Source: Chlorokybus atmophyticus (Eukaryota > Plantae > Mesostigma and Chlorokybus algae). From it: 64,000 bases of DNA. Of the stretch, positions 21,472-42,050 are shown in pieces. The notes under the pieces are model-generated. The model worked only from the letters and a program-made list of their open reading frames with translations, was not told the origin of the DNA and did not search any database. Both the position numbers and the translations under genes were made by a program. Within the stretch, counting starts at the first letter, position 1; every line of letters begins with the position of its first letter. The stretch spans positions 1 through 64,000 of the forward strand of contig RHPI01002503.1 of the NCBI GenBank assembly GCA_009103225.1. Reading direction: 5' to 3'.

Positions 21472-23523
21472 ATGGAGGCATTCGCTTGCGTATTGTCGGC
21501 CAGTGTTACACTGGAACGTTTGCAAAGGCCCAAACTGACACTCAGACGAGGCACGCACACAAACCGGCTGCTCATTCAGCGAAGCAGCAACCATAGCTGT
21601 CATTCAAGTGGCGAAGCATTGCGCGCAAGGTGTTACACTGGCGACACTCCACCACTGCTGGTTGTCATCGGCGGTGGCGCCGCCGGTGTTTTCGGTGCCC
21701 TGCGCGCGAAGGAGCTCTGCCCCGCACTGGACGTAACTGTTCTCGAGAAGGGTGCACCACTCAGCAAGGTGCTGATTGCGCTGCTATTGTAGCGGTTGGC
21801 GTTTTGCATTCTGCGTTAACAGCTGTGCTTTTTTACTCACCAGGTGAAGGTGTCTGGCGGCGGCAGATGTAATGTTACAACCGGCCTGCCTCTTTCGGTG
21901 CTAGAGCTTGCGGGAAAGTACCCAAGGTATGTGTGCGAGCACACGCAGTGTGCATGTGCGCACATGCGTGCATGTAAGTAATAATGCCGCGTGTGCGCGG
22001 TCTTGTGCATGCGTGTACGTGTGCAAGCGCCCGCACATGCGTGTTGGTTGTGCTCACTTGCAGTCTGTGGCAGAGGGCACAAGGAGCTGCGTGGGAAGTT
22101 CTTCAGGACATACGGGCCTGCAGACACCGCCGAGTGGTTTGTCAAGAGAGGAGTGCAACTGAAGACGGAAGTGGACGGCCGCATGTTTCCCATCACCGAC
22201 TCTTCATCCACCATCATCGACTGCTTGCTATGCGAGGCACAGCGGCTGAATGTGCGCCTGCAGACGGGCACATCCGTGGGTAACATCTGACTTCAACTCT
22301 GACTCACCTTTATGAGTCACGCATGCTTACGGACAACACTGAGAAAAGTTTGATTACTTATACTGATTGTATTGCTTGCAGGTTCAGTCACCAAAACAGC
22401 CCCCGGCTTTGGAGTGTCCATTACGTCCAAGTCCCGCAATGCTGAGCCCCTGGCAGCCAACTATGTGTTGCTGGCATCAGGGAGTGCAGTGTCGGGCCAC
22501 CGCATGGCCGAGTTGCTGGGGCACACCATCGTGCCGCCGTGCCCCAGCCTGTTCACCTTCTGCATAAATGACCCCAAGCTGACCGCACTCGCGGGTACAA
22601 GCTTTCCGCACGTTACCGCGAGGCTGCAAGTGGCAGGGAAGAAGGCGCAACAGCAGGCGAGTGTCTAACCATCCATGACATTGCACGTTTTGCTCGCTCA
22701 GCTTGCTTTGAAACCCAACAACAAACATCCAACATGTTGCATCTGCTGCAGGAAGGCCCGCTGCTCATCAGTCACTGGGGCTTAACCGGCCCTTGCATCC
22801 TGAAGCTCTCCGCATGGGCCGCGCGGGAGTTGCACGACAGCATGTACAAAGCAGAGCTTCAGGTTGACTTTGTGCCGATTTTGACTTCAATGGAGATCAG
22901 TTCCATGCTATTCAACACAATGCGCTCGGCGCAAGGATGCGCGGGGAGCTTCTGTCCTTCAAAGCTAGCGCTCACGCGCCGCTTCTGGTGTTATGTTCTT
23001 GAGTCTGAAGGCATCGACCCGACCAAAACATGGCGATCGATGCCGGAGAAGGTGCTAAAACGAGTCGCGGAGAAGTTGAAGCGCTTCCCTTTTGCTGTTA
23101 CTGGGAAAGGGGTGTTTAAAGATGAGTTTGTGACAGCTGGAGGAGTGACGCTAAAGGTGAGCAGACCCAACATGTGTTATTTTCGTACTGGTTGGCATAT
23201 CAGGTGTCTGCTGCGTTTGGTTGATCACACGGTTATTTCAATCAATGAAGGAGGTAAACATGAACACCATGGAGAGCACTATTGTGCCAGGGCTGTATTT
23301 CGCGGGTGAGGTGGTCAACATTGATGGCATTACAGGTGGCTTCAACTTTCAGGTAATGCGGTGGTGTGTCTGTGTAAGAGCGTGTCATGGTTGTTGCCTC
23401 CATTGCGAGTGTAGCTCATGCGCGGGCCTCGTGCAGAACGCTTGGACTGGCGGCCACATCGCAGGCACAGCCATTGCAACGCACACCATGGAGCAACTGC
23501 AGTTGTCCTTGGCACATGGTTGA
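21472..23523 (+). CDS. HI0933/BaiN-family FAD/NAD(P)-dependent oxidoreductase
   Basis: [90 protein letters not shown]. Confidence 0.93.
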
Positions 23524-28100: not shown

Positions 28101-29620
28101 ATGGCGTCGCGGTCAGTGCTGCTGGCGCTATTGGCTGCTGTGCTCTTCTTGCAGCTCGCCGCCGCCGGCGTCGCCGCTGGAGCCGCCCGCAGAGAGCTGC
28201 TCCAAAGCAATATCCCCACAGACAACACTGCCCCTCCTCCCAAGATTGGTAAGCTGCTGCTTGTGGCTGTGTCCAGGGCTTGGCTGGCAGTGGTTGTCAA
28301 TGCTTGCTCGCCTCGAATAATCAGCGGAACCTTGAGCTCAAGCTGGTCCTGCCATTCGTGTGTGCAGAGGGTTCTTGCAAGGCCCTGCAGTGCCCGGACA
28401 ACTACACGGACGTCTGCCGCCTGGCCCCCCTGTGTATTGTGCAGAACTACAAGTACGTCTGCTTCTACACCAACAAGAAGTCCAAGGATGGCGCTGCATG
28501 CAAGAAGGGCTTCCCCAACTACTGCAAGGACGGCGAATGCAAGCGTAAGTCACAGTTCTAGCAGGGCACATAACAATCAATATCCCAGTTGTACTGCTGC
28601 AAAGGCAGCATTGGTTTCTTACAGAATGTGGAGTACAAGCAAGCCACTCACTTGTGGCAATTGCAGAGGCGTTCTGTTTCCCTGGCGATGCCACAGTGCA
28701 ACTGGAGAATGGCCAGAAGATTGCCATGTCCAAGTTGATGCCTGGTGCCCGTGTGCAAACTCTGAATAAGAATGGGAAGGTTGTGTACACCGATGTCATG
28801 CTGTTCCACCACGCGGTCAATGGCCCGGCTGATGGCGCCCCAAGCCCGATGCTCAGCATTGCTTACGAGTCTGAGGGGCGCGCTGGATCACTGCGACTGT
28901 CACCTGAGCATATGCTTTACACAGCACCATCTACCAATGCCTCCGCAGTCAAAGTTGTTCCCGCCATGGCGCTGAAGGCTGGTGAGTATTCTTGATAGCA
29001 ATTGCCATGCAAGCGGGTATTGTGTAGCGTCTGAGTCTGCACGGTGGAGTTGTACGATGCAGCAAGCAGCAGCTTCATCACGTGTCGTTTATTATGGTCG
29101 CAGGTGACTTGGTGTTGGTGGAGTCTGCTGGTCGGTCAGTAGCAGTTGAGATTGTTGGCATTAGCAAGGCTGCTGCAGCTTCCAGCTACTATGCTCCGGA
29201 GACAATGTCTGGTAAGCCAACCACCAAGCAGGATTACTGAAAAATCCCTGCTCAGCACTTTAGTAGGTTGCTTACACTGTGGTACAACGCGACACAAGGT
29301 TGTTGAGTTGTCCAAAAGTAACTCAATGGCATGCCATCACAGGCAACCTGTTGGTGGATGGTGTGCTGGTTTCCACGTACGCTCGCCCTGCGAACACCCA
29401 CGAAGGCGCCCACATGTCAATGGCGCCCATGCGCGCACTGTACAGGATGTTCCCGAGCTTGTTCTCTCAGCGCCAGACGGGTGTTTTCTGGTACAATCAG
29501 ATGCTCCTCAGCATCCCCCAGCCAGTCCGTGATTTCCTCGCTCGCACATTCCTGCATGGCAAGGTGGTGCAACGGCCGCATATCGCTGCGACCATTGAGA
29601 CAAACTCTCTGGCGGCCTGA
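28101..29620 (+). CDS. Secreted Hog-domain protein (signal peptide, 8-Cys domain, Hedgehog-type Hint + sterol-recognition region); exons 28101-28248, 28368-28544, 28667-28981, 29104-29211, 29343-29620
   Basis: Hydrophobic signal peptide, then AF|CFPGDATVQLENG (Hint block A), LRLSPEHML (block B), GDLV, YYAPETMSGNLLVDGVLVSTY, and HMSMAPMRALY...GVFWYNQML (SRR-like). Splice phases are consistent. Confidence 0.88.
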
Positions 29621-30750
29621 GTACAAATTTGCTGGAGTGTACTTGTACCAGTTCTTTTCAGTCTAGGCGCATGATGCCTGGCAAACACATTCGAGTTGCA
29701 AGATATTGGATGGATCGGTCACAGCAGCGTCTTGTGCGGGGATGTGCTGTGTTATGTAGGGGATCTATAAGGTTGATGCGGAACTTCCGAGTAGAAGTGT
29801 CTGCTACTGCTGATTTCTCCATGTTCAATGGTTGTCGGCAAGTCATCATGTTCTTCATGATTCGGTTGTCCTTGTTGTAATTGTTGTGTATGAGTGCAGG
29901 TTGTTTTGTGATCCTCAGACTGTTTAGGCCTACATATGTGCAAGCTTCATTGGAGTCTTTCACCTGTGCAATGCTGGTCGACATGGAGTCATGTGGCCGA
30001 ATAGAGAAAGGGGTCACAGGGCGGACGTGCACACTTCATTGCATCAAAAGCCTCATCTGTGGCTGGGCTGAGAAGTGTGAATACATCTAACTTGTATGCC
30101 AACGTTCATTGTTTGCTTTCAGCTCTGACATACTGCTACGGTTTTGTGTATTACCAACACGCTGATGTCCGCAACTTGTGTTACCGCTGTTGTGAGTATT
30201 GGCACTTGCATGTATGGGTGCAGGTTGTACATTGAGTAAATGCAATCATGCAGCATATGTGCATGCAGATGACTATGCCACACTGCTGATCTCACACAGC
30301 AAGCCCTGCCAGAACACAGAATACAGAATTGCCGTATGCTCGGACTAGCCAGTGCACCCATACCAGCCTGCGATCACTCAATAATTGCCAACAAGTGAGT
30401 CCGCAAGCACAACACCAGTGAAGTGCTGTGTGTCTCACACAGCACTTCACATACCCTATACAACACCAGTGAAGGCACTTATAACATTGCAAAAAGAACC
30501 CCCTCCCATCAAGCAGCAGAGAGTCATATGAACGAGTTCTGCTTGAATATGGCTGCATAGCAGATAGCGTGCACTCAGCAGCACATGCACAAAACGTTCT
30601 ACATGAGACGGATACTAATGAACAATGATACAAGTACTAATGAACAACCTCAGTTCAAGCTGAAAGTATAACGCAACTGCACAAGTCGCTGCATGACAGC
30701 GACGTGTCAAGGTATACATCGCCTTGTCTTGTTGAGCTCAACTGCATTGA

Positions 30751-33700
30751 TCACTCGCACTTGATGGCGCGGTAGATGTGGCGCACAAACAGCAAGGAAG
30801 CGCGGTAACCGACGGACCCAAGCATCAAGAAGAACCCGTAGCAAACCGCTCCCATGTATCCAAAGAAGAAGGACGTTTGCATGAGGCCCGTCATGTCCGA
30901 TCGTGCATTGTAATAGTAGAAGCAGTACGCGTAGATGAACAGCCCTGTGGACCCACCGCACAAGACAGACCTGCAGCGCACACATGTTAACCACTGCAAC
31001 ATGGAAGCCTGTAACCAAACTTGATGCTCGCAAGATTGTACCTCCACCACCAGTGGTGATCCTCAGCTGCTAACTGGAAGTAGGTGAGGGCAACAGTGAT
31101 GAAAGCCGTCACGATCAGCAAGATTAAGAAGACGATGAAAAGGATGCTGTAGATGGTGTACACCTGGCAGAGCAATGGTGAGTACTTGTGTGCAATAACT
31201 ATGCGTGCTCCGCTTCTGCACAAACCACAAAGAGCCGAACCACACAAGGCAATGTTCTCGCACGTAGGCACCCACACACCTTGTGGCCCCAGACGCTAGC
31301 AAAGATGTAGTAGAGCTCAATGTAAATGGCGCTGAATGGCAGGAACCCGGCCATGCACATCTGCACAAAACATAGAACTTAGCTCAGATTATGGCATCCA
31401 AACATCCTGTAGTTGGCACTAAGGTGATCTGACCAGTCACAATGCTCGTTACCTGGGGGACCGTGCCGCGATACCATGGCAGCGGTGGAACCTCACGAGG
31501 ATACTTGGTTGTCCGCACAGGGGCATAAAACTCAGTGGTGGTGTTCTTGCCAGCAATGCCTCCGATAACCTGGCAACAACAGTGGTTAGGACTTGCACAA
31601 TGATGCAACACAGTACAGCATTTGCCAAGCCATCAACTAACACCAAGTGATTTGAAAGCGCCTACCGTTAGAGGGATGGTCACCAGTGTCCAGATGACAA
31701 TGATCACGCAAATGGTTCCAAACGGAAGTGCTGCGGTAGAGTGATATGCAATTGCAACAGTGTTGCAGAAGCTGAATACCAGGAACAATGGTCCGCAGAA
31801 AAGACAGCAGGTCAAAAGAACATTCCTCACCTGCATGACCGCATGTCATGTGAGCTTCCACAACAATGCTTATAATCCTGATAACCATGCATGTGGCAAG
31901 CAACTCACCCAGGTTTCGCCACCCATCTGCTTGAAATTGCAGGATGAGACATAGCCTGCAATGCCAGCAGTCAAGGCATACAGGACAATGCTTGCAGTGT
32001 ACAGCGCTCCGCGGTTGTAGGGATAGAACACCCCAACGAGAGCCAGCAAGAAGATGGCAATCATCATTGTAAGGAGCTGGGTGCCAGAGCCAATGATGGA
32101 GCAGAACAGGCTGCATGCAGCAAGCATAGGGTGAGGAACAAAACAACAAATGACAGAATCTGGCATCAGATTCCCTTAGCAAAGGGCTGATGAAGGCTAG
32201 CCATGCTAAGTACCTGGGGTGCTTGGGGAAACGGAAAACATCGCCATGGATGTACTTCCAGCCTGTCTCTTCTCCATCGTCAGCGTCATCCTCACGGGCG
32301 TACCTGCACGTGAACTATTAGCCTGCAAAAAATCTGGGAAGAAGCAGTCTCCTCATTGCCATATCATGTACAATTCAGACCAAGCGACTCACTTGATGAA
32401 GTCGTTCTTGAGCACACGCATGAGAATGGTCGCCAAGAAGCCGGTCAATAGCAGTACTGTCACACAGCTGTTAATGATACTGAACCAGTGAATCTCCAGA
32501 TGCTGTGGCAGGAAGGAGTATCGCGAATATTTCTCCATGCGGCGCTCATATGGGATGTTGGTCTCCTTCCACTTGACAGAGTATGAGAATTGTACCTGGT
32601 GGTATGCACAGTCCATGGTCAGTGGTGCCTGCTGTTTCAGACGCGCACCATGCATGCCCTGTGTTGTCAGCCCTGCAGTCCCTGTGCACACTACCGATAC
32701 AACCGAAACAGCACTTGACGCACCATAGTCTCTTGGTCGCCTGAAATGTCCACAGTGCGCGTTGGGTCTGTTGACACATTGATCTCGATCACTTTATCCT
32801 CGTTGTAGTTAATCTCAAAGTGCACGTGGGTGAACAGGTAGTAGCGAAACTCTGTGCCTCCACCACGCACAATCTTCTCCATCTGCGTAGCACAATGTTT
32901 ATCAGCACATGCATCTGGAAAGGCAGGCAGTTATTGCTTGCAAAAGTACACACAATTATGGTACATGGTACCAATTTAAAAAGACCCATCAACGCTATGC
33001 CATGGCTCACCTTGCCAACGAATCCCCAGATAGGAAGGTCGTCATAGTACATCTGGAAGTAGTAGTCATCGCGTACGGCACGGCGGAACTTTTCTAGCTC
33101 ATCCTTGCCCAACCTCTGATTGCATAGTGGCTGCATCTCACGGTCGACACGGAAAGACAGATCGTACAATGAGCTTGCCAGACGATCGCCATTCAGGACT
33201 TCACCCAGATCCTCGCTCTTATGTTGCACGCCAGCGGCCGGCGGGCAGAATGGGAGATCATAGTATTGGTATGTTTCACTGCACACAACGAAATGAGGTG
33301 AGCCTCCTCACCACTCCACTCCGGAGATTGTTTGAAGAGCAAAGGCAAAGAAAACAATGCTGAGCGAGGTCACAGTTTAAAACAGTTGCCATTGCTTGGC
33401 TCTGCCGATCCAGTACTGAAAGGTGACGTATGCAAGCGATATCAACCAGATATCAAGCCTACATTACTTCACAGCCCGAATAGGGGATTGAGGTGTCACG
33501 GTCGAGCTCCGGTAGGTCCATAATCAACTTCAATGAAGGAAATGTAATCAAATGCGCAATGTGAACTAGGGTACTGCAGCTGTGGAATCCCTAAATCGCG
33601 TCCCTAGCACCCTCAACATCCGAAACAATATTGATGTGAACTGACAAGATGCATTATTCTTTCATGCATTGCCCCAGACGCTGTCAACCTGTCGAGCTGC

Positions 33701-39941: not shown

Positions 39942-40511
39942 TACCCGCAACCTGGAGGCTGCAGCGCCCATTGCTCCGGGCAGCGCCCATCGTCTGAGCC
40001 TCCTGCAGCGACTGGCACGGTCTGCTTCACGCGAAACCCCAAGCAGCGTCCTCACCTGCTGCCTTAAGGGTTCTTCCTCTCTGGACTGTGGCCAAACCCT
40101 CAACTATGCAGCCCTTTCACTTAGGTCTGGCTTCGCCGGTCGTCAGCCCGGCGATTCATGCCCAAGTAAGTTGAAACGTTGCTCAGCTGTGTTTGGGAAT
40201 TGGAGCCTTCAGCTGTGACACTACAGATTGTTTGTCAAGCTGTTAGGACGTGTTACAACACAATTCGTGTTGTAACGCGGACCCGGACTGGTGTGTGCGT
40301 CGACATGTGCATCAGTGGTATGGCTGCATCCAGATCTTTACTTGATCACCACTGCCATGTTGCAAGCACTGGCGGTGTCTTGCATTACCCGTTGGTCGGC
40401 GATTGGTCTCGTCAGTCAATGTCCTGTAGCAGCCTCTACTACGTGCATTATGACCATACTGGCGTCTGCCATTGGAACCCCAAGCTTACACTGGTGTCGC
40501 CTCAGGCGGGC

Positions 40512-42050
40512 ATGGCTGTCAAGCCTGAGCGCATGCAGTCGCCCAGTGCTCAGCACATGTTGGCCGATGGTATGCCCATCCTTTCCTCGGCAAATGACCT
40601 GCAAAGCCTTGTCAAGAAGCTTGGCGCCACATCCCGTACATGGCTGCGATTTGACAGCGAGGGCGGTTCTTGCCTTATGGAGGCAGACAAGCATGCTATC
40701 ATGCAGGTTTGTGCGTAGTAAAGTTATCATTAACAGATGCGCTGCCATGAACAGATCGTATTGTTTGATGATCTGCATCAGTAACAAGAATTGTTCATGC
40801 TTCCAGAGGGTAGGTGTACCCGCACGCGATCTCCGTATGCTGGACCCACAGTTGACGTACCCGTCAACAATACTGGTGCGCGACCGTGGGCTTGTCCTCA
40901 ACTTGGAGCACATCAAGGCGATCATAGGCACGGACGAGGTCCTGCTGCTGAACTCCTCCTCAGAACAGGTCGCTCCGCTCGTTGAAGAGATGCGAAAACG
41001 ACTCCGTCGTTGTGGTGCTGGCTTTGATCATGGTGATGAGCAGCCCAAAGCTGTTGGCAGGCATGCTGGCATGCTCAGTGACGATGAAAGTGCTGCGGAC
41101 TCTGACAGTGTGATGTCGCCTGGCTCTCGACAAGCCAGACAAACCCCGCGTTCAGCAACCAGAGGAGAGGCTGTCCTCCCTCTTGAGTTTCGTGCCTTGG
41201 AAGTGGTACTTGAGCATGTGTGCGGCATGCTTGACACTCAGACTCAGGAGCTCAAGACAGGCATGTACCAAGCTCTCGATGCTCTCACCTTCAAGGTCAC
41301 GAGTCTCAATCTGGAGCGCGTCCGTCGGCTGAAGAATAGGATGACCAGACTCACTGCGCGAGTGCAGAAAGTCAGGGAAGAGTTGGAGTCTCTTCTCGAT
41401 GACGATGAGGACATGGCTGACATGTATCTGACCCGCAAGTTGATGCCTCCCATGTCGCCTGCCACCTTGTCCACACCTGCTTCAAGGCGCTCCACGCGCT
41501 CTAGCAAGTCCTCCAAGTCGGAACAGTCCAACGCGCCACCAGATGTGCAGGAACTGGAGATGCTTCTGGAGGTGTTCTTCACACAGGTTAGTGGCGCACA
41601 TTGCCAACCACATGACTGCAGCACTTGCGTTTTCAGCATGCAGTGCCTGCAACTACAGTGGACATTGGTTTGCATATGCGCTTGCTACCTTTCTGCTGCG
41701 TAGATTTCCTGTTCCTTGACGGTGGTTGCGCGGTGCAGATGGATGGTGTCTACAACCAGCTAACTGCACTGCGTGAGTATATAGACGATACTGAGGATTA
41801 CATCAACATAGAGCTTGACAACCACCGCAACCAGCTCATCCAGCTGCAACTCGTGCTTTCCACTGCCACCTTCACCCTCAGTATTACTGGTCTGGTGGCG
41901 GGCGTTTTTGGCATGAATGTGCCGTTTGATTGGAATGGCAGCAGGGGAGTGTTTTATCCAGTCGTTGGGCTTTCCTTTTTTGCCAGCTTCGCGCTTTTCT
42001 TCCTTTTCACTGGGTTTTTGAGGTGGAAGCGCGTGCTTTGCGTCGGCTAG
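40512..42050 (+). CDS. MRS2: MRS2/CorA-type magnesium transporter; exons 40512-40706, 40807-41586, 41739-42050
   Basis: ADKHAIMQRVGVPARDLRMLDP, TILVRDRGLVLNLEHIKAII, LPLEFRALEVVLE, QKVREELESLLDDDEDMADMYLT, ELEMLLEVFF, IDDTEDYINIELDNHRNQLIQ, GVFGMN. Confidence 0.95.

Follow-up and report, generated by a model that had tools for sequence, protein, structure and literature searches.

To our knowledge, animal Hedgehog is the only protein known to carry a covalently attached sterol, and whether Hog domains outside animals carry out the same chemistry has been a standing question since they were catalogued in 2008. The question is raised again by a gene of the alga Chlorokybus atmophyticus, whose lineage is one of the two earliest-diverging streptophyte lineages. 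Here we ask whether this gene encodes a Hog protein, what its Hint domain is fused to, and what the protein could release. Non-animal Hog proteins have been described in Physcomitrella, Selaginella, red algae, alveolates, cryptophytes, and other organisms (Bürglin 2008, PMC2362128), in agreement with a first-pass annotation of the locus, which had listed such proteins from protists, red algae, and moss as being of largely unknown function.

Gene structure and genomic context

The DNA analysed (the window) is a stretch of 64,000 nt from C. atmophyticus (assembly GCA_009103225.1, contig RHPI01002503.1, positions 1 to 64,000, forward strand). The Hog gene lies on the plus strand at 28101 to 29620; an ATG at 28101 and a stop codon ending at 29620 fall exactly at the limits given in the first-pass annotation, which had also named a green alga as the source, a description that is right in the broad sense for a streptophyte (charophyte) alga. 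Boundaries read from the sequence define five exons and four GT-AG introns of 119, 122, 122, and 131 nt, with GTAAG or GTGAG donors and CAG acceptors, and all four introns are in phase 1. The exons sum to a coding sequence of 1026 nt with a single, terminal stop codon and a product of 341 aa. The GC3 of the coding sequence is 0.69, compared with an intron GC of 0.49. The features of the gene are listed below; residue assignments within the Hint domain are based on alignments.

28101..28248 (+): exon 1; start codon, signal peptide (approximately residues 1 to 22/29), RRELL, and Pro-containing linker (APPP, residues 44 to 47), extending to the first base of codon 50; donor ttg/GTAAGC
28368..28544 (+): exon 2; symmetric, phase 1-1; residues 50 to 108, the 8-Cys module; NYT sequon at 61
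28667..28981 (+): exon 3; predicted cleavage junction F111/C112 and the N-terminal half of the Hint domain; PF01079 at 5.6e-15 alone; 100% identical to P0001 residues 110 to 213
28675..28677 (+): codon of Cys112, the Hint nucleophile (HhC C1), which matches SHH C198
28810..28812 (+): codon of His157, at the HhC D46 general-base position
28900..28911 (+): codons of S187-P-E-H190, the TxxH equivalent (HhC T69/H72)
29104..29211 (+): exon 4; central Hint beta-strands, residues 214 to 250, inside the full-length PF01079 match; pLDDT >90
29343..29620 (+): exon 5; last Hint strands, SRR-like helices, C-terminal tail of about 20 residues, and stop codon; PF01079 profile positions 150 to 209 alone
29375..29377 (+): codon of Thr261, at the HhC C143 position
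29399..29554 (+): SRR-like region, residues 269 to 320; helix 1 with H273, P278, and R280, and helix 2 with F298-W299-Y300 (HMMER alignment to human SHH 7e2i; block-mean pLDDT 77 to 95)

Searches were run exon by exon, and full-length analyses used the database protein P0001, which was recovered by the exhaustive search with exon 3. The five-exon product and P0001 (341 aa) are identical residue for residue. P0001 is EukProt EP00898 Chlorokybus atmophyticus P005778, which is jgi Chlat1 Chrsp44S05798, and its public annotation entry already has PF01079 attached. Because the spliced product equals P0001, the join between the Cys-rich exon and the Hint exon at the junction ...KQAF/CFPGDATV, as read in the first-pass annotation, is present in our own splice model and in an independent public one. 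That annotation had also considered that splicing might leave the Cys-rich exon unconnected to the Hint domain; the independent annotation shows the same join. When each exon was used as a tblastn query, no second copy of the Hog gene was found within the 64-kb window.

Pfam matches identified three genes in the flanking DNA.

22734-23309 (+): HI0933-like flavoprotein exon, upstream of the Hog gene (PF22780, 2e-22)
approximately 30707-33286 (-): multi-exon TM9SF/EMP70 (nonaspanin) gene (PF02990 pieces at 30751-31050, 30987-31277, 32389-32691, and 32789-33286)
40291-41703 (+): MRS2-like magnesium transporter exon (PF22099, 9.3e-28)

The flanks of the Hog gene are thus ordinary spliced nuclear housekeeping genes of similar composition, with no transposon context. 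The TM9SF/EMP70 gene lies immediately downstream of the Hog gene in convergent (tail-to-tail) orientation.

Hint domain, active site, and SRR-like tail

The full-length protein was compared with the PF01079 profile, a check that the first-pass annotation had proposed. The match scored 119.7 bits (cutoff, 29.7; E value, 1.8e-34), spanning residues 107 to 309 and profile positions 8 to 209 of 213, and exon 3 alone scored 55.9 bits (5.6e-15). The Hint domain starts at C112, the Cys of the CFPGDATV motif where it had been placed from the sequence. Among proteins of solved structure, human SHH was the best sequence match (2.3e-13), with Drosophila Hedgehog next; a second, weak stretch of the comparison with SHH aligned GVFWYNQMLL with the GIHWYSQLLY motif.

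The fold was examined with an AlphaFold2 model for which 45 aligned Hint sequences (P0001 and 44 Hint/Hog matches) served as input. The pLDDT exceeded 90 over most of residues 112 to 263, with 10-residue block means of 80 to 98 for residues 111 to 270, and helices were modelled at residues 269 to 285, 287 to 290, 299 to 306, and 309 to 320 with block means of about 77 to 95. The model has a Hint fold. The top two Foldseek matches were the Drosophila Hedgehog-C structures 6tyy and 1at0 (TM scores of 0.87 to 0.88; E value of about 5e-12), and inteins and BIL domains ranked lower. Likewise, VIA-align superimposed model residues 112 to 264 on Drosophila Hedgehog-C with a Z score of 21.3 and an rmsd of 1.5 to 1.6 Å over 143 to 144 of 145 to 146 residues, while inteins reached a best Z score of 17.8 (Hint-fold range, Z 13 to 18). 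A structure prediction other than a Hint fold had been named as grounds for abandoning the first-pass reading; what the model returned was a Hint fold that is closest to Hedgehog-C. This is almost certainly a genuine Hog-domain gene, and the combined data support a protein in which a signal peptide and an 8-Cys module precede a Hint domain of the Hedgehog type followed by an SRR-like tail, the two making up a Hog domain.

Residue numbers were related to those of HhC as follows: HhC residue n corresponds approximately to residue 111 + n, with a further offset of about 7 past an insertion that precedes the TxxH motif. C112 and F113 are invariant in the alignment (45/45). So is H190 (45/45), the His of the S187-P-E-H190 motif that had been picked out as the TxxH equivalent; position 187 is Thr in 25 of the 45 sequences and Ser in the remaining 20. 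The HhC D46 position is occupied here by His157 (His in 38/45 and Asp in 6/45), and the HhC C143 position is occupied by Thr261 (Cys in 21/45, Thr in 5/45, Ser in 5/45, and Ala in 6/45). Given the His majority at the first of these positions and the presence of Cys in fewer than half of the sequences at the second, most of the retrieved relatives lack the "canonical" Hedgehog active site. The residue that precedes the scissile bond is Phe (F111), in contrast to the Gly of animal Hedgehogs.

Both active-site substitutions can be set beside published work on SHH. The D46H mutant of SHH autoprocesses (PMC12054796), and PDB 6tyy is the structure of a D46H protein. At the other position, C143A and C143D abolish autoprocessing of SHH, and C143 has been proposed to bear an obligatory branched thioester, by analogy with the intein +1 residue; the C143 substitutions in that work did not include Thr (PMC12054796). 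In moss and red-algal Hog domains, the equivalent motif-J cysteine is Ser, Thr, or Asp (PMC2362128).

The C-terminal helices were aligned with human SHH (HMMER against 7e2i). Residues H273, P278, and R280 of helix 1 align with H374, P379, and R381, and F298-W299-Y300 aligns with the HWY motif of helix 2, such that W299-Y300 corresponds to W434-Y435 and H433 is replaced by Phe298. The hydrophobic moment of SRR-like helix 1 is 0.42 to 0.44. In human SHH, mutation of H374, of R381, or of any of the HWY residues lowers cholesterolysis, and mutation of P379, which is absolutely conserved, reduced the protein level instead (PMC7242414). The long Gly-rich SRR loop of SHH is missing from the Chlorokybus protein. 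An SRR-like tail had been noted in the first reading, and it stands: the PF01079 match runs to profile position 209 of 213, the SRR residues align, and helices extend over residues 269 to 320.

Compared with animal HhC (Hint plus SRR; 1AT0, 6TYY, and human SHH-C), the Chlorokybus domain thus has the same fold (Z score, 21.3; rmsd, about 1.5 Å), a nucleophilic Cys at the domain start, a CFPGDATV-type motif, a T/SxxH motif, and a helix-loop-helix tail with equivalents of SHH H374, P379, R381, and W434-Y435. It differs in having about 25% identity, in four replacements (Asp46 to His, Cys143 to Thr, Gly at −1 to Phe, and the His of HWY to Phe), in the loss of the Gly-rich SRR loop, and in carrying an orphan 8-Cys module as its N-terminal cargo in place of the Hedge signalling domain. 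With inteins and BIL domains, it shares the Hint fold (Z score, 13 to 18) and a first step consisting of an N-to-S acyl shift; unlike them, it has no C-extein, the chain ending after the SRR-like helices, and no above-threshold Pfam intein/BIL match.

Two other identities were ruled out. An intein or BIL domain was rejected on sub-cutoff scores (17.7 bits for Vint and 15.1 bits for Hint_2), the lack of a C-extein, and a structural match weaker than that to Hedgehog-C. A bona fide Hedgehog was rejected because residues 1 to 106 gave no HH_signal match and Thr261 stands in place of Cys143.

The putatively secreted N-terminal region and the relatives of the protein

The N terminus is hydrophobic, with a Kyte-Doolittle 19-residue mean of 2.57 at residues 6 to 24, and a crude hydrophobicity-based prediction placed candidate small-residue signal-peptide cleavage sites after residues 22 to 29. 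Residues 1 to 29 make up a hydrophobic signal-type leader, which bears out the signal peptide called in the first reading, and residues 30 to 49 form a short linker with RRELL and APPP. The RRELL sequence (residues 30 to 34; window positions 28188-28202) is a dibasic RRxL-type motif directly after the signal-peptide hydrophobic core, and we take it to resemble the pro-peptide sites of plant S1P/subtilases.

The domain of about 60 aa with eight Cys described in the first-pass annotation corresponds to exon 2 (residues 50 to 108), with the cysteines at 53, 58, 66, 72, 81, 94, 102, and 107 (spacing, 4-7-5-8-12-7-4). The module coincides exactly with one symmetric 1-1 exon (28368-28544) in a gene whose introns are all in phase 1. 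With this arrangement, the module is insertable by exon shuffling with the reading frame kept.

Relatives of the 8-Cys module were sought in several collections. Against Pfam, there was no significant match (the best was ADAMTS_CR_2 at an E value of 0.54), and residues 1 to 106 as a whole had no Pfam match and hence no Hedge signalling domain (HH_signal). No match was found among PDB sequences at E values up to 10, and no usable match was found in the protein atlas. A word-index search with the stop-free frame around exon 2 returned no relative, which excludes only close relatives since shared 5-mers and a length filter are required. Comparison with the N-terminal regions of the 73 other retrieved proteins (phmmer and blastp) gave chance-level scores only. 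The module also had no confident predicted fold (pLDDT <50), and a single-sequence AlphaFold run gave a mean pLDDT of 47.7. The 8-Cys module is an orphan, without a detectable relative or a confident fold.

Other Hog proteins also have cysteines ahead of the Hint domain. In P0007, P0029, P0045, P0051, and P0053, which are distant Hog matches from protists, metagenomes, and a mollusc group, the 70 residues upstream of the Hint Cys hold 7 to 10 Cys. In sequence, none of these Cys-rich stretches resembles the Chlorokybus module. Since many protist Hog matches have such stretches, it is the architecture that recurs and not the module, and a Cys-rich cargo joined to a Hog domain looks like a recurrent design. 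In nematodes, warthog, groundhog, and quahog are similarly modular: the Hog domain releases the small, secreted, Cys-containing N-domain to which it is joined. Their N-domains are unrelated to the Chlorokybus module, and nematode Hog domains contain a conserved Cys pair of their own. Match P0003, from a nematode, is about 38% identical over the matched part of query exon 3.

Relatives of the Hint domain were sought with an exhaustive phmmer search of exon 3 (104 residues) against 1.84 billion cluster representatives. P0001 itself was the only match below 1e-10, the next was at 7.8e-9, and 55 proteins reached 1e-3. Identity to the aligned relatives is 22 to 34%, and the Chlorokybus Hog protein is without close kin. 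Thirty relative clusters were looked up, most of which were metagenome or assembly fragments; the named ones were sturgeon Shh and proteins of a nematode, Arcella, Breviolum, and abalone, and none of these is from a streptophyte. No second Chlorokybus protein and no land-plant protein was among the exon 3 phmmer matches; with a query of 104 residues and a database of this size, divergent paralogues or moss proteins could fall under the threshold. Word-index searches with exon 3 and with full-length P0001 found only the protein itself, a result that again excludes only close relatives given the required shared 5-mers and length filter. In a FastTree tree of the Hog region, P0001 lay on a long branch among Hedgehog-like sequences, a placement given no weight at 22 to 34% identity.

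The order of parts (signal peptide, lineage-specific N-region, and Hog domain) and the replacement of the motif-J Cys are shared with the non-animal Hog proteins of the 2008 catalogue (PMC2362128). The Chlorokybus protein differs from the members of that catalogue in lineage (Chlorokybophyceae); the moss and Selaginella proteins were compared by their published description only.

Proposed processing and its alternatives

The explanation that we find best, and consider probable, is a secreted Hog precursor that follows a Hedgehog-type pathway with sterol-ester release of the 8-Cys peptide. The precursor would enter the ER and lose its signal peptide. The Hint domain would then carry out an N-to-S acyl shift at F111-C112, with C112 as the nucleophile and S187 and H190 assisting, and an incoming nucleophile, bound by the helical SRR-like tail, would resolve the thioester; the most likely candidate is a sterol, reacting through its 3-hydroxyl with activation by His157. 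The product would be an eight-Cys N-peptide of about 80 to 90 residues (about 9 kDa), ending in Phe111 with a C-terminal lipid ester, which may remain at or close to the cell surface and act there in signalling, adhesion, or defence. In inteins, Thr can serve as the +1 nucleophile, and Thr261 may carry an oxy-ester branched intermediate in the role of HhC Cys143; alternatively, that step may be skipped.

The steps of this proposal differ in strength. The gene model, the PF01079 match, the fold, the catalytic and SRR residues, the hydrophobic N terminus, and the housekeeping context all speak for it. Gene structure, domain identity, fold, and the presence of the catalytic and SRR residues are shown by the data, and we infer that the protein is secreted and cleaved, what its adduct is, and what the peptide does. 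Self-cleavage at F111/C112 is likely. That the adduct is a sterol is more tentative, a serious possibility. Both this cleavage and the "possibly sterol-anchored" peptide of the first-pass annotation are best described as plausible. More doubtful still is the narrower version in which the Hog domain would esterify the orphan 8-Cys peptide with an algal sterol via an oxy-ester, and not a thioester, on Thr261. Thr261 for C143, Phe at −1, and Phe298 for H433 count against the best explanation, as does the fact that the adduct of nematode Hog proteins is unknown, from which the name "ARR" derives (PMC2362128).

The same substitutions lend themselves to another reading, in which the protein cleaves itself without a sterol: the thioester would be resolved by water, another small nucleophile, or a lipid, the tail would be an adduct recognition region, and the N-peptide would be soluble and secreted. 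The changes of C143 to Thr, H433 to Phe, and G-1 to Phe are consistent with this, many protist relatives lack an HWY-type motif, and the ARR was so named because the adduct is unknown for non-Hedgehog Hog proteins in general (PMC2362128). However, the Chlorokybus protein retains the Hedgehog SRR signature more fully than do most protist matches, with H273, P278, R280, W299-Y300, and a confident helix-loop-helix, and a general base (His157) is retained at the position that activates the sterol hydroxyl. We regard release without a sterol as rather unlikely, although it is the strongest of the alternatives.

Considerably less probable is a Hint domain that is catalytically dead or very slow, with the protein working uncleaved as a two-domain molecule that is secreted or retained in the ER. 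Such a protein could be suspected from Thr261, which occupies the position where C143A and C143D kill SHH processing, from the bulky Phe at −1, and from the isolation of a sequence that has no close orthologue to show purifying selection. Against this, C112, S187, H190, and His157 are all intact, and the open reading frame is intact with a coding-type GC3. Thr, Ser, or Ala is found at the C143 position in 16 of the 45 relatives, and Ser, Thr, or Asp is found there in moss and red-algal Hog domains; the recurrence of Thr, Ser, or Ala argues for a tolerated, functional state.

Finally, a gene-model artefact, with the Cys-rich exon and the Hint exons on different transcripts, or a contaminant locus, is hardly credible: the public model may derive from the same sequence signals as our reading, but the two agree at every residue, the four introns are canonical, of 119 to 131 nt, and in the same phase, the Hint nucleophile lies just 3 residues into exon 3, so that this exon needs an upstream coding exon, and the genes nearby are likewise spliced, of an ordinary nuclear type, and similar in composition.

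With non-animal Hog proteins catalogued in 2008 and P0001 publicly annotated with PF01079, the Chlorokybus protein belongs to an already known kind. It is modestly new in its lineage, in its unusually good retention of the Hedgehog SRR signature, and in the orphan 8-Cys cargo on a symmetric 1-1 exon. Our literature search found no paper linking Chlorokybus and hedgehog and none that assays cleavage or sterol transfer biochemically in a Hog domain from plants, algae, or other non-metazoans. At 341 aa, with one small cargo and the SRR residues that matter in human SHH, the algal protein is a compact, tractable test case, and its natural substitutions, His at D46 and Thr at C143, are of mechanistic interest. 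An in vitro assay of cleavage and sterol use would tell whether sterylation is older than animals, whether the reaction can dispense with the C143 branched intermediate or use an oxy-ester in its place, and what sterols the domain takes. Sterol release of the N-peptide would suggest that one of the land-plant relatives that diverged earliest has a Cys-rich extracellular peptide with a lipid anchor. If sterylation through an oxy-ester proved true, it would be the first demonstration outside animals that a protein is sterylated and would place sterol-tagged secreted peptides at the base of the streptophyte lineage.
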